Both the position numbers and the translations under genes were made by a program. 64,000 nucleotides of DNA, from sequence record MW749006.1. One strand, given 5' to 3'. Below the pieces are notes generated by a model, which worked only from the letters and a program-made list of their open reading frames with translations, made no database searches and was not told the origin of the DNA. Positions 9,166 to 39,943 of the stretch are shown here, in pieces; the first letter of the stretch is position 1; each line of letters starts with the position of its first letter.

Positions 9166-9169
9166 GTAA

Positions 9170-9212
9170 CTACTCCCTCTACCCGTTATAGGTAGAGGGA
9201 GTAGCTTTCTTT
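9170..9212. terminator. Bidirectional terminator between convergent genes
   Basis: 14-bp perfect stem CTACTCCCTCTACC/GGTAGAGGGAGTAG followed by CTTTCTTT. Confidence 0.75.
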
Positions 9213-9678: not shown

Positions 9679-9754
9679 AAATGATACCCTTTAGGTGAAT
9701 AGATGGACTTCAATGTATATAGATTTACTATCTACCTTAGGTTATATTATAAGT

Positions 9755-9770
9755 ACATATATAGTAAGTA
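9755..9770 (+). promoter_or_regulatory. Putative phage early promoter motif (ACATATATAGTAAGTA)
   Basis: Same motif recurs at 11787, 29959, 30577, 31721, 34741 (degenerate), 37446 and 41647, always intergenic and upstream of non-structural genes. Confidence 0.6.
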
Positions 9771-9781
9771 GAATAGCTAAT

Positions 9782-10000
9782 GTCAACTACCCCTACCTTA
9801 AGGTAAGGGCTTGTGAAGAGTAGCCAACTACTCCAACAACTAAGCTGTTGTACTAGCCGGATTGTAACTTAGCTACAGCGACGTGGTAGTCGCAAGAATA
9901 CGTCTCGAATGCTTCTCTAGTTCGGACCTCTATGGTAGAAAGTGGCGAAGAGACCTTGACTTGTCAACAAGATCCCGTAAGGGAATAACTTAAGGAGGTG
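9782..10000 (+). ncRNA. omega-RNA scaffold (HEARO/OMEGA-like) of IsrB
   Basis: About 220-nt structured non-coding region directly 5' of isrB: GTCAACTACCCC...GGGCTTG start, internal hairpins, GAATGCTTCTCTAGTTCGGACCTCT...GGCGAAGAGA segment resembling omega-RNA core motifs, ending in an AAGGAGG RBS. Confidence 0.8.
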
Positions 10001-10005
10001 TTCAC

Positions 10006-11133
10006 ATGCTGAACTCCCAAGAACCAGCAAAACAAAGATGGGTTCCTGTGGTGTCTTCCACAGGTAAACCCTTGATGCCTTGCTCTCCCAAGAGAGCTAG
10101 GAAACTAATGTCCAAAGGTAAAGCTATACCTAGACACCTTAAAGGACTTTTCTACATTAAGTTAACGGATAGAAGTGATGGTGAGGTTCAATCCGTTGTT
10201 GTGGGTATAGACCCGGGAAGTAGATACGAGGGATACACGGTTAAGTCAGCTACTCGCACTTTCTTAAACGTCAACTCACTAGCTGCTGATGGTAAACGTG
10301 TAAAGAGGATTATGGAAGCTAGAAGTAACTCTAGGAGAGCTAGACGACAGCGTAAGAATCCGTACCGAGCTAATCGAATGAATCGCTCCAGAAGTAAAGG
10401 GTGGGTTCCACCCTCTACTAAAGCTAGGTGGCAACTTAAACTTAACATTCTGAAGTGGTTTGCTAGATTATATCCAGTTACCAATGTGGTTGTGGAGGAT
10501 GTTATCTTCGCTACCGAGAAAGGTGGTAGTGTACGTAACTTAGGATTCTCAGCTATCCAATCTGGTAAGAATTGGTTATATTCTCACATAGTAGCTCTTG
10601 GTTACAACCTAACCACTTTCAAAGGAAGTCAAACAGCAGCTTTCAGAAGACGATTGGGATTGTTCAAGACCACGAACAAAGCTTCTAAGTTGTTTGATTC
10701 GCACTGCGTAGATTCATGGGTACTCGCTAACGAGGTTTTAGGTAACCAACTAAAACCTGACCTAACGCACGTACTAGAACTCAAACCGCTTACTTACATT
10801 AGGAGGCAACTACACCGTACTTGCTTCAAGAAAGGAGGTATTAGAAGTAGGCGTGGTGGTACTATGTCTCTAGGTATTCAGAGAGGTACTCTGGTAAAAC
10901 ACGTTAAACATGGTAAATGTATAGTAGGGGGTAACAATGGCGTAGACAGAGTTAGTTTACATTGCAACATCTCTGTTAGAAATTTAACTCGGAATACTAA
11001 ACTAGTAGACTTGCAACTCATAGCTCACTCACCTTGGTTACTGGTAGATAGACTACGTACTTGTAAGAAAGAGAAGAACGCTAGACGTTACAACAGATAT
11101 TTACTTAGGAACTCGTTACTAGGTAATATGTAA
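10006..11133 (+). CDS. isrB: IsrB RNA-guided nickase (IscB family lacking HNH; RRXRR/PLMP-RuvC)
   Basis: N-terminal PLMP (GKPLMPC), RuvC-I GIDPG, Arg-rich bridge helix RRARRQRK, RuvC-II VVVEDV, RuvC-III SHCVDS; no HNH insertion; 375 aa. Confidence 0.85.
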   Translation: MLNSQEPAKQRWVPVVSSTGKPLMPCSPKRARKLMSKGKAIPRHLKGLFYIKLTDRSDGEVQSVVVGIDPGSRYEGYTVKSATRTFLNVNSLAADGKRVKRIMEARSNSRRARRQRKNPYRANRMNRSRSKGWVPPSTKARWQLKLNILKWFARLYPVTNVVVEDVIFATEKGGSVRNLGFSAIQSGKNWLYSHIVALGYNLTTFKGSQTAAFRRRLGLFKTTNKASKLFDSHCVDSWVLANEVLGNQLKPDLTHVLELKPLTYIRRQLHRTCFKKGGIRSRRGGTMSLGIQRGTLVKHVKHGKCIVGGNNGVDRVSLHCNISVRNLTRNTKLVDLQLIAHSPWLLVDRLRTCKKEKNARRYNRYLLRNSLLGNM

Positions 11134-11140
11134 GTTAACC

Positions 11141-11170
11141 GAGTAGATAGAGTATTATCTATCTACTCCC
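11141..11170 (+). terminator. Hairpin after isrB
   Basis: Perfect 10-bp stem GAGTAGATAG/CTATCTACTC. Confidence 0.5.
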
Positions 11171-11217
11171 TTTCCTCCCCTCCCTAAAGGAAGGGGTCAC
11201 CATGGAGTAAACCATAT

Positions 11218-11766
11218 ATGTTTAACCAGATTCTAGAAAAAGCATTACCAGAAATCAATTCACATTTACCTTTAGATAGTTTTACAGAGATAACATCAGT
11301 GCGACCTGGGAAGAACAACGACACTCATTCTATAGTTTTAGAGGGAGTGGATGTGGATGGTTGTCGAGTGATTGAATCTTACTGGATTGGTTGTCGTGAT
11401 TCAGATTGTGGTTTAGAGAATGTCCATGAACTAAAAGAATTACCAGACGGTTTGTTGGAGGTAATGAACAAGTGTGGTAATGAACTTACGTTACTACAAA
11501 CAGAAGCTATTGTTTACCATCTGAATAAACTACAAGGTTTAACTGAAAAAATCAGTAACGACTATGTAGGTGGTATCTACTCTTATAACGACGAAAACGT
11601 TGGAGATAGAACTTGGCGTAAGTTCTTAGTAACAGAAGTCACTAATCCGGTATTTCCGATGAGACTACGTGGGGTCTCTATGGACGACGACGGTGAGTGT
11701 CGTGAATTAGAAATCTCCCAACTGAACTTGTTAGAGCGTGTTGGTGATTATCCTCCACTACTCTAA
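11218..11766 (+). CDS. Hypothetical protein
   Basis: 182 aa; its GGAG RBS lies within the element right end. Confidence 0.7.
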   Translation: MFNQILEKALPEINSHLPLDSFTEITSVRPGKNNDTHSIVLEGVDVDGCRVIESYWIGCRDSDCGLENVHELKELPDGLLEVMNKCGNELTLLQTEAIVYHLNKLQGLTEKISNDYVGGIYSYNDENVGDRTWRKFLVTEVTNPVFPMRLRGVSMDDDGECRELEISQLNLLERVGDYPPLL

Positions 11767-39885: not shown

Positions 39886-39943
39886 ATGTCAACTACCCCT
39901 CCCCCCCCCCGGGGAAGGAAGGGTCTCCATGGAGTACAGTTTT
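39886..39943 (+). mobile_element. 58-bp internally deleted (ends-only) derivative of the IsrB element
   Basis: ATGTCAACTACCCCT matches 9779-9793 exactly; GGAAGGGTCTCCATGGAGTA closely matches the right end GGAAGGGGTCACCATGGAGTA at 11189-11209; the two are joined by a C10 run. Confidence 0.75.

Follow-up and report, generated by a model that had tools for sequence, protein, structure and literature searches.

A probable early promoter precedes an IsrB/omega-RNA element within the gene 74 leader of the jumbo Bacillus phage AgentSmith, with a putative later loss of leader DNA

The stretch of DNA analysed here (the window, 64,000 nucleotides) is identical to sequence of Bacillus phage vB_BspM_AgentSmith (MW749006.1, 200,233 bp), and its positions are record positions minus 62000. 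The annotation of AgentSmith, which includes several split RNA-polymerase beta-type genes, a PhuZ-like tubulin and UvsX, is that of a jumbo phage of the phiKZ/AR9 style. Judged from sequence, positions 9755-9800 contain the upstream boundary of an IsrB/omega-RNA element (9782-11206, 1425 nt) of the non-autonomous IS200/IS605 type, which lies inside the 5' leader of gene 74. The features are as follows.

9168-9206, both strands: bidirectional terminator-like hairpin between gene 71 (+) and gene 72 (-), a 14-17 bp stem followed by a T-run on each strand
9740-9772, + strand: probable virion-RNAP early promoter, with G9740 (-15), TAtAr at 9748-9752 and the core ACATATATAgTAnnTAgA at 9755-9772
9762-9781, + strand: nominal 20-nt guide-encoding flank, native phage DNA, of which only about 9771/9774-9781 is predicted to be transcribed
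9782-10005, + strand: omega-RNA scaffold with a HEARO match, abutting the transposon end named RE in TnpA nomenclature
9790-9809, + strand: transposon-end hairpin SL1, within the omega-RNA scaffold
10006-11133, + strand: IsrB (AGENTSMITH_73, 375 aa), with a PLMP/RRXRR domain, a split RuvC, no HNH and a TAM-interacting (TI) domain
11177-11206, + strand: downstream transposon end, made of a hairpin (11177-11196) and TCACCATGGA, set by the resumption of empty-allele homology at 11207
11207-11217, + strand: what is left of the native gene 74 5' leader, GTAAACCATAT, identical at 10 of 11 positions to the leaders of relatives
11218-11766, + strand: gene 74 (AGENTSMITH_74), 182 aa, intact, no assigned function
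39888-39943, + strand: solo-hairpin relic of the IsrB element before the ATG of AGENTSMITH_100, one of three in the genome

The element at 9782 is identified as IsrB/omega-RNA by the RRXRR domain of its protein, by the match of that protein to DtIsrB (PDB 8dmb), by the conservation of D69, E164, H233 and D236, and by an RNA that aligns from the first position of the HEARO model. The N-terminus matches Pfam RRXRR (PF14239, E 3.8e-40, residues 13-172), with the PLMP motif visible in the translation. RRXRR was the sole family matched, and no HNH family appeared among Pfam-A matches with E up to 0.01. DtIsrB is an OMEGA nickase of solved structure (Hirano et al. 2022), tested alongside K2IsrB from a viral metagenome (PMC9581776); the single AgentSmith sequence aligned to it with an E value of 1.7e-41 (residues 13-309), and a profile of 27 sequences with an E value of 2.4e-90 (residues 4-334). 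Among the 27 homologues, the RuvC residues D69, E164 and D236 are invariant and H233 is nearly so. The dN/dS ratio among the three full copies described below is 0.18-0.23, and by this measure IsrB is under purifying selection. Calculated by branch, it is about 0.27 for the copy at 9782 versus 0.17-0.19 for the others, which is only slightly higher.

Three independent lines fix the scaffold start at G9782: 1) the HEARO covariance model aligns there from its position 1; 2) the second genomic copy aligns from exactly 9782; and 3) empty-site metagenome contigs break at 9781. The left junction is thus AAT|GTCAAC. A first-pass annotation of this DNA, which read the junction as ATG-TCAAC, had the letters right and placed the cut one base too far to the right. 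HEARO is the Rfam family of IscB omega-RNAs, and the match to RF02033 (9782-9960) covers the full span of the model at 41.6 bits (E 1e-6), a score that does not reach the Rfam gathering score of 83; the other two full copies match in the same way. Covariation among the three omega-RNAs comprises one compensatory pair only. The minimum-free-energy fold of 9755-10010 was no better than those of shuffled sequences (z = -0.9), a measure that is uninformative for pseudoknotted RNA. Omega-RNAs of IscB and IsrB abut the TnpA-defined right end. Both ends of the element have similar subterminal hairpins (9790-9809 and 11177-11196) and lack inverted terminal repeats, and no target-site duplication was seen at any copy. 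A search of the whole 200-kb record with the Y1 (HUH) TnpA model PF01797, which found matches in 10 of 14 control genomes (6 above the curated cut-off), gave none; tnpA lies nearby in only about 1.5% of IscB/IsrB elements, so its absence is usual. At the right junction we found what had been described at first, GGAG (11204-11207) and then the ATG of a 182-aa ORF at 11218. The GGA of this Shine-Dalgarno sequence is element DNA. The suggestion that the element end supplies the Shine-Dalgarno sequence of the next gene agrees with every copy, and gene 74 is intact; its homologues in relatives are all 182 aa long and 68-86% identical (protein word search, n=4).

Immediately upstream of the junction lies the motif ACATATATAGTAAGTA (9755-9770). 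With up to two mismatches it occurs 6 times in the window versus 0.33 expected, and none of the shuffles reached 6. A longer element of roughly 33 nt has this motif as its core; the genome contains about 22 copies of it, all co-oriented with the non-structural genes that they precede. A logo of these 22 sites has an invariant G at -15, TAtAr at -7 to -3 and ACATATATAgTAnnTAgA at 1-18, and the site at 9755 fits every conserved part of it. The genes behind the copies encode small hypothetical proteins, a tubulin-like protein, the RNAP beta-type proteins 102 and 133, a GIY-YIG nuclease and an HTH regulator; no annotated virion protein was found among them. Core positions 1-13 match the AR9 early consensus AAATATATATTAT-N6-G(+1) at 10 of 13 positions, and extended AT-rich motifs are typical of virion-RNAP promoters in phiKZ-like phages (PMC5312081). 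Like the AR9/phiKZ early promoters (Lavysh et al. 2017, PMC5312081), the AgentSmith motif is extended, conserved and AT-rich, has a few dozen copies and precedes early-type genes. Unlike those of AR9, it carries the extra G at -15, TAtAr at -7 to -3 and TAgA at 15-18, and it has no conserved base at the +1 distance; polymerase and timing are assigned here by analogy. The placement of the copies and the AR9 match bear out the initial view of the motif as a phage early promoter of virion-RNAP type, which would most likely be read early by the virion RNA polymerase. The promoter is conserved in relatives with an empty site. Elsewhere in the record, the annotated start of AGENTSMITH_13 (record 11551) is probably too far upstream: a perfect promoter core lies at record 11579 (L014:11551-11670), and a Shine-Dalgarno sequence and ATG follow downstream of this internal core near record 11668.

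The 20 nt before the scaffold (9762-9781) read TAGTAAGTAGAATAGCTAAT; their first 9 nt overlap the motif, and the element starts 11 nt behind the promoter core. We infer a transcription start near 9774 by AR9 spacing, or at 9771-9772 by the last conserved block, TAgA. Since the predicted start is at 9771-9774 and the terminator at 9168-9206 would block read-through, the guide would be only 8-11 nt long. No other source of a plus-strand transcript was obvious, given this terminator and the divergent gene 72. The 20-nt guide supposed at first is therefore not what the predicted start would give, as just 8-11 of the 20 nt would enter the RNA. That the guide flank is native DNA from the promoter side, by contrast, is supported by element-free relatives, which retain the promoter and GAATAGCTAAT. 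A genome-wide search for a good match to the guide of either AgentSmith copy followed by NTG returned zero self-targets, and other promoter copies share the TAM-distal 9 nt only, in line with the proposed avoidance of self-targeting; this lack of a self-target would matter little if the TAM-distal guide bases go untranscribed. Separately, GAATAGCTAAT (9771-9781, directly after the core) is better conserved than the remaining leader, and it is kept even in the distant relative L022, which lacks the upstream half of the promoter.

Further copies of the element allow its ends to be compared. The second full copy in AgentSmith (the sister copy) is divided by the arbitrary ends of the record (minus strand, from record 1432) and shares 87% nucleotide and 86% protein identity with the copy at 9782. 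The third (85% protein identity) lies in a distantly related phage (IMG/VR contig 3300018411_000101) among different genes. These three full copies are about equidistant from one another, and their omega-RNAs, 88-90% identical, are better conserved than the ORF. AgentSmith also has three solo-hairpin relics of roughly 50 nt (record 101888, which is window 39888, and record 148750 and 151093), each consisting of the first 16 nt of the element joined to the downstream hairpin and tail, a fusion of two hairpins. A scan for hairpin or right-end halves gave the five AgentSmith copies only. All copies, full or relic, start with GTCAAC and end with the hairpin, about 7 nt, (T/C)(A/G)T(G/A)GAGTA, 2-8 nt and ATG. 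The relic before gene 142 is retained in one relative (L088) and absent in another (L089), whose downstream gene differs. A survey sequence, GTCAACTACCCCTNCC, is present in 54 viral contigs, of which one was flagged as a full element by a crude script, so no statistics are drawn from it. In a wastewater run (X1), a contig with a word depth of about 516 has only CAATG separating 9985 from 11061; this relative of the element, which keeps the omega-RNA and downstream end and has lost nearly all of the IsrB ORF, may be a trans-dependent derivative. An unrelated IMG/VR contig (L036:3903-4010) carries a two-hairpin, PATE-like mini HEARO element that ends with GAGGTG, a few bases and ATG, and SD-bearing ends may be more widespread among viral IscB/IsrB elements.

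The sister copy has a clean empty site. In relatives L023 (92% amino acid identity), L024/L025 and L027, the homologues of gene 2 and gene 215 lie 4-6 nt apart, and the empty site in L023 reads ...GGTTAAATTA|ATGTCTG. The AgentSmith site reads ...GGTTAAATCA, then the element ending in GGAGTAATATTG, then ATGTCTG. The insertion is scarless, changing AAATTA|ATG in L023 to AAATCA-element-ATG, with no duplication and directly before the start codon. The IMG/VR copy ends with GTAATATTG followed by ATGAAC. Because the sister and IMG/VR copies both end with GTAATATTG in different gene contexts, the element extends up to the last base in front of ATG, and the two copies would have ATGT and ATGA as their TAMs. 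All six IsrBs tested so far use NTG, NTGA or NTGG TAMs (PMC9581776). The ATG-type TAM put forward in the first-pass annotation thus holds for the sister copy, which is inserted precisely before ATG and fits the published NTG, and is not supported for the copy at 9782. An empty site of the IMG/VR copy was not found: among the matches listed, its downstream gene occurs in four contigs, three of which have the element upstream, and the fourth begins just 26 nt before the gene. Where AgentSmith has the relic upstream of gene 145, relative L028 (90% nucleotide identity) reads CGAAA, 20 native bases and ATG; similarity to L028 resumes at GTAAA, and 10-20 native bases are missing in AgentSmith. The bases flanking the end distal to the guide are ATGT and ATGA at the two clean copies; at the copy at 9782 and at this relic the junction is blurred by the missing native spacer. 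As a by-product of the relic, gene 144 now ends at a TAA in the relic hairpin loop. In the record, AGENTSMITH_144 runs into the relic at 151093-151111 (L017:1093-1111), its last six codons are transposon-derived, and L028 stops at its native TAA. Two observations on annotation concern the sister copy: the AgentSmith record was opened inside it (L012:3221-3234 corresponds to record 200220-200233; L003:1-20), and AGENTSMITH_215 is annotated from a TTG at record 200223, with its homologues starting at an ATG 3 nt downstream.

We then compared the gene 74 leader with element-free relatives, whose sequences came from a protein word search and look-up of their contigs only. INPHARED gave zero close relatives for the 5-kb region or for gene 74, and so did IMG/VR and JGI metagenome scans with gene 74 and gene 144; the public runs matched are metagenome contigs of relatives (5-13% of sampled words). 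Four gene 74 relatives were listed, the contig DNA being compared for three and the fourth listed without DNA. Relatives L019, L020/L021 and L022 have no IsrB between their gene 72 and gene 74 homologues. The promoter and GAATAGCTAAT are conserved in the alignment of empty alleles. Beginning at the motif, L020 agrees with the window at 27 of 27 positions; the five closest of the six alleles share GAATAGCTAAT without change, and L022 differs from them by one base. The empty alleles read GCTAAT, a 44-nt leader (L020:1604-1647, L019:5957-6000) with its own Shine-Dalgarno sequence, AGGT, and then ATG, and AgentSmith lacks the first 33 nt of this leader (L020:1604-1636). A contig from a landfill metagenome (X5) joins 9781 to 11207 with 33 other letters between, and two wastewater runs (X2, X3) have the leader as in the relatives, in the form of loose ends at 9781/9782. 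In BLAST comparisons, L019 and L020 become homologous again at record 73207 (window 11207). On these alignments, the element stands where the relatives have 33 further nt of leader, among them most of the original ribosome-binding site, and it contributes the GGA of the new one. The bases beside the guide match in the empty alleles are ATAG (L020), ACAG (L019, X3, X5), GCAG (X2) and ACGG (L022). Empty-site alleles, which were to be sought in related phages, thus do exist, with a junction other than the one foreseen and with bases other than ATG beside the guide match; the predicted allele GCTAAT|ATGTTTAACC is in no relative found, and at least six independent alleles have the 44-nt leader instead.

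We also aligned the TAM-reading residues. In DtIsrB, R323 reads G3 and Q326 reads A4, R323A kills activity and Q326R accepts G4; the enzyme was studied with a 20-nt guide and nicks 8-11 nt from the TAM (PMC9581776). A profile alignment to 8dmb, a fusion construct with an offset of 150 residues, places the two columns as follows.

IMG/VR copy: R in the R323 column, Q in the Q326 column, junction ATGA
Sister copy: R in the R323 column, K in the Q326 column, junction ATGT
Copy at 9782: N in the R323 column, R in the Q326 column, ATAG or ACAG in empty alleles

The copy at 9782 alone of the 27 aligned homologues has Asn in the R323 column. Arg is found there in 24 of the other 26, both sister copies included, and two more distant ones lack it. 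The copy at 9782 does have an Arg one residue before the R323 column, which might substitute for the TAM-reading Arg. By sequence, this copy may be unable to recognise any TAM, and because its guide is short and the TAM-reading arginine is lost, its homing ability is uncertain.

These data bear on how the element arrived. Had it simply been inserted with GCTAAT on one side and the gene 74 ATG on the other, it would have a 20-nt guide and an ATG TAM and be competent to cut GCTAAT|ATGTTTAACC. The sister copy is exactly such an insertion, the IMG/VR copy likewise abuts ATGA, and the published IsrB TAMs are NTG. At gene 74, however, the 44-nt leader stands between GCTAAT and ATG in at least six independent empty alleles, with GCTAAT|ATG in none. 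The last 11 nt before the AgentSmith ATG match the native leader at 10 of 11 positions, and the tail of the sister copies, GTAATATTG, differs from them; the predicted start would leave 8-11 nt of guide, and the TAM-reading Arg is missing. As a boundary, GCTAAT|ATG was rejected on the empty alleles, and we regard this account as a whole as very unlikely. A boundary at ATG with a later leader deletion on the left side was also rejected, leaving the native-like 11-mer unexplained.

Our best overall explanation, to which we assign a probability of about 70%, is a non-autonomous IsrB/omega-RNA element in the gene 74 leader, behind a promoter most likely read early, whose family would spread as an RNA-guided nickase. 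For the copy at 9782 we favour a history of insertion and later loss of leader DNA. Insertion would have occurred right after GCTAAT, next to ATAG (at the relic, after CGAAA and next to AT(A/G)), so the left junction would be original. A deletion would then have joined the SD tail of the element to the native Shine-Dalgarno sequence through short direct repeats about 40 nt apart. Such repeats are likely because ribosome-binding contexts of this kind are over-represented before ATG in the genome (GGAGTAA 13 versus 2.4 expected, AGGTAA 42 versus 16 expected). We favour this model because one kind of secondary event would cover all three sites; it needs a TAM looser than NTG. Against the overall explanation count the absence of NTG beside the guide match from all empty alleles, the Asn in the R323 column, the HEARO score below the gathering score and the lack of a Y1 transposase in the phage. 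The order of events at gene 74, both the insertion point and the side that lost DNA, is not fixed by the present sequences.

Empty-allele homology resumes exactly at GTAAAC, and that of the gene 145 relic at GTAAA, where L028 has 10 extra native bases. GTAA is the IS608-like TTAC target on the opposite strand. The element could accordingly have been inserted first at ...CACACAG|GTAAAC, with a GTAA TAM, and a later 33-nt deletion flush with the omega-RNA end could have fused the scaffold to GCTAAT, leaving a stranded copy and a secondary guide for which there is no cleavable target. The loss of the Arg and the slightly raised branch dN/dS would suit the relaxed constraint expected of such a copy. 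Yet the sister site natively lacks GTAA and the element brings 9 more bases there, GTAATATTG; these 9 bases recur unchanged in the IMG/VR copy of another phage, which implies that the element end extends past GGA. In addition, two independent deletions would have to end exactly at the element boundary, without microhomology, and the GTAA match may be a side effect of the common GGAGTAA/AGGTAA ribosome-binding contexts. We consider this history unlikely. GTAA as a general TAM, with the boundary after TGGA, was rejected as well, because GTAA is absent from the sister empty site and 9 additional bases were gained there.

In the overall explanation, a single early transcript starting at about 9771-9774 would contain the remaining 8-11 nt of guide together with the omega-RNA, the IsrB message and gene 74. 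Insertion points directly before start codons would follow from an ATG-like family TAM. OMEGA nucleases are thought to be homing enzymes that restore excised transposons. Here, the RNA-guided nickase would nick insertion-free alleles of co-infecting relatives, and recombination would copy the element in. To our knowledge, OMEGA-driven spread between co-infecting phages has been discussed and so far not demonstrated.

Two readings give the copy at 9782 a function of its own. It may have been re-aimed: the N/R pair would predict an N-T-A-G TAM, and with an original left junction the protein would be an early homing nickase directed against the early promoter start region of a rival. In the closest empty allele (L020), ATAG comes right after a perfect 27-nt match to promoter and guide; some of the other alleles have ACAG. 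This reading is tentative and, to us, rather doubtful; if true, it would mean that IsrB TAM specificity evolves in nature by a two-residue swap. Alternatively, the copy could be domesticated, its guide being too short to permit nicking and serving for binding only, at the early promoter start region of its own genome or of rivals, as an RNA-guided regulator or blocker. TldR proteins, which derive from TnpB, act as RNA-guided regulators. A predicted guide of merely 8-11 nt, a target GAATAGCTAAT that is strictly conserved in the five closest of six empty alleles and purifying selection on IsrB would agree with such a role. The catalytic residues of RuvC are nevertheless all intact, the AgentSmith site itself is followed by GTC of the scaffold, and the presence of several copies and relics suggests that the family is otherwise mobile. 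Domestication is the least probable of the readings weighed here.

The kind of system is already known (OMEGA/IS200-IS605, with IsrBs reported from viral metagenomes); the SD-bearing end, the landing sites at start codons, the single-hairpin relics, the promoter capture and the natural change of TAM-reading residues are features of this variant. Like DtIsrB, the AgentSmith protein has a PLMP domain, a split RuvC without HNH and a TI domain, with a candidate omega-RNA upstream of the ORF and a predicted guide at its 5' side; the sister copies abut ATGT and ATGA, fitting an NTG(A) TAM, and the IMG/VR copy has the R/Q pair for G3 and A4. The differences from DtIsrB are a nucleus-type jumbo Bacillus phage as host, an omega-RNA scaffold before the ORF of 224 nt versus 262 nt, N/R in the R323/Q326 columns, a guide probably truncated by the promoter 11 nt upstream, and activity that is predicted only. 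As in ISC-type IscB elements and PATEs (Meers et al., bioRxiv 10.1101/2023.03.14.532601), there is no tnpA in cis, the subterminal hairpins are similar, the omega-RNA is bounded by RE, the element is co-oriented with the upstream gene, insertion is scarless, gene-less minis occur, and guide plus TAM would define the empty donor site. Unlike the two-ended PATEs, the AgentSmith minis are single-hairpin collapses. Unlike in ISC-type IscB elements, a Shine-Dalgarno sequence is built into the downstream end, suitably spaced from the start codon that follows, the native spacer is missing at two of the three sites compared, and no transposase source was found in the phage. Like the T4 Seg/Mob homing endonucleases (reviewed in PMC13565253), this is a selfish nuclease gene between conserved phage genes, patchy among relatives and expected to spread by cleaving the element-free allele during co-infection. 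By contrast with them, the target would be set by RNA and TAM and not by protein, the enzyme is a predicted nickase, and the element is delimited by transposon ends and found at several unrelated positions within a single genome.

As a natural test set AgentSmith is compact, comprising two divergent full-length copies, both under purifying selection, the three relics and sequenced empty alleles of each full copy. One of these copies is wired to an early-type promoter and the other embedded in a late structural operon, and three different pairs of TAM-reading residues stand beside three different junction sequences. Landing just before start codons and bringing its own ribosome-binding site, the element has a harmless transposon seat in a tightly packed genome. 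The window also holds a group I intron (Rfam RF00028, 55384-55713, + strand, 81.8 bits; gathering score 50), which overlaps AGENTSMITH_112 at its annotated end and precedes AGENTSMITH_113; the flanking ORFs may be exons of one gene.
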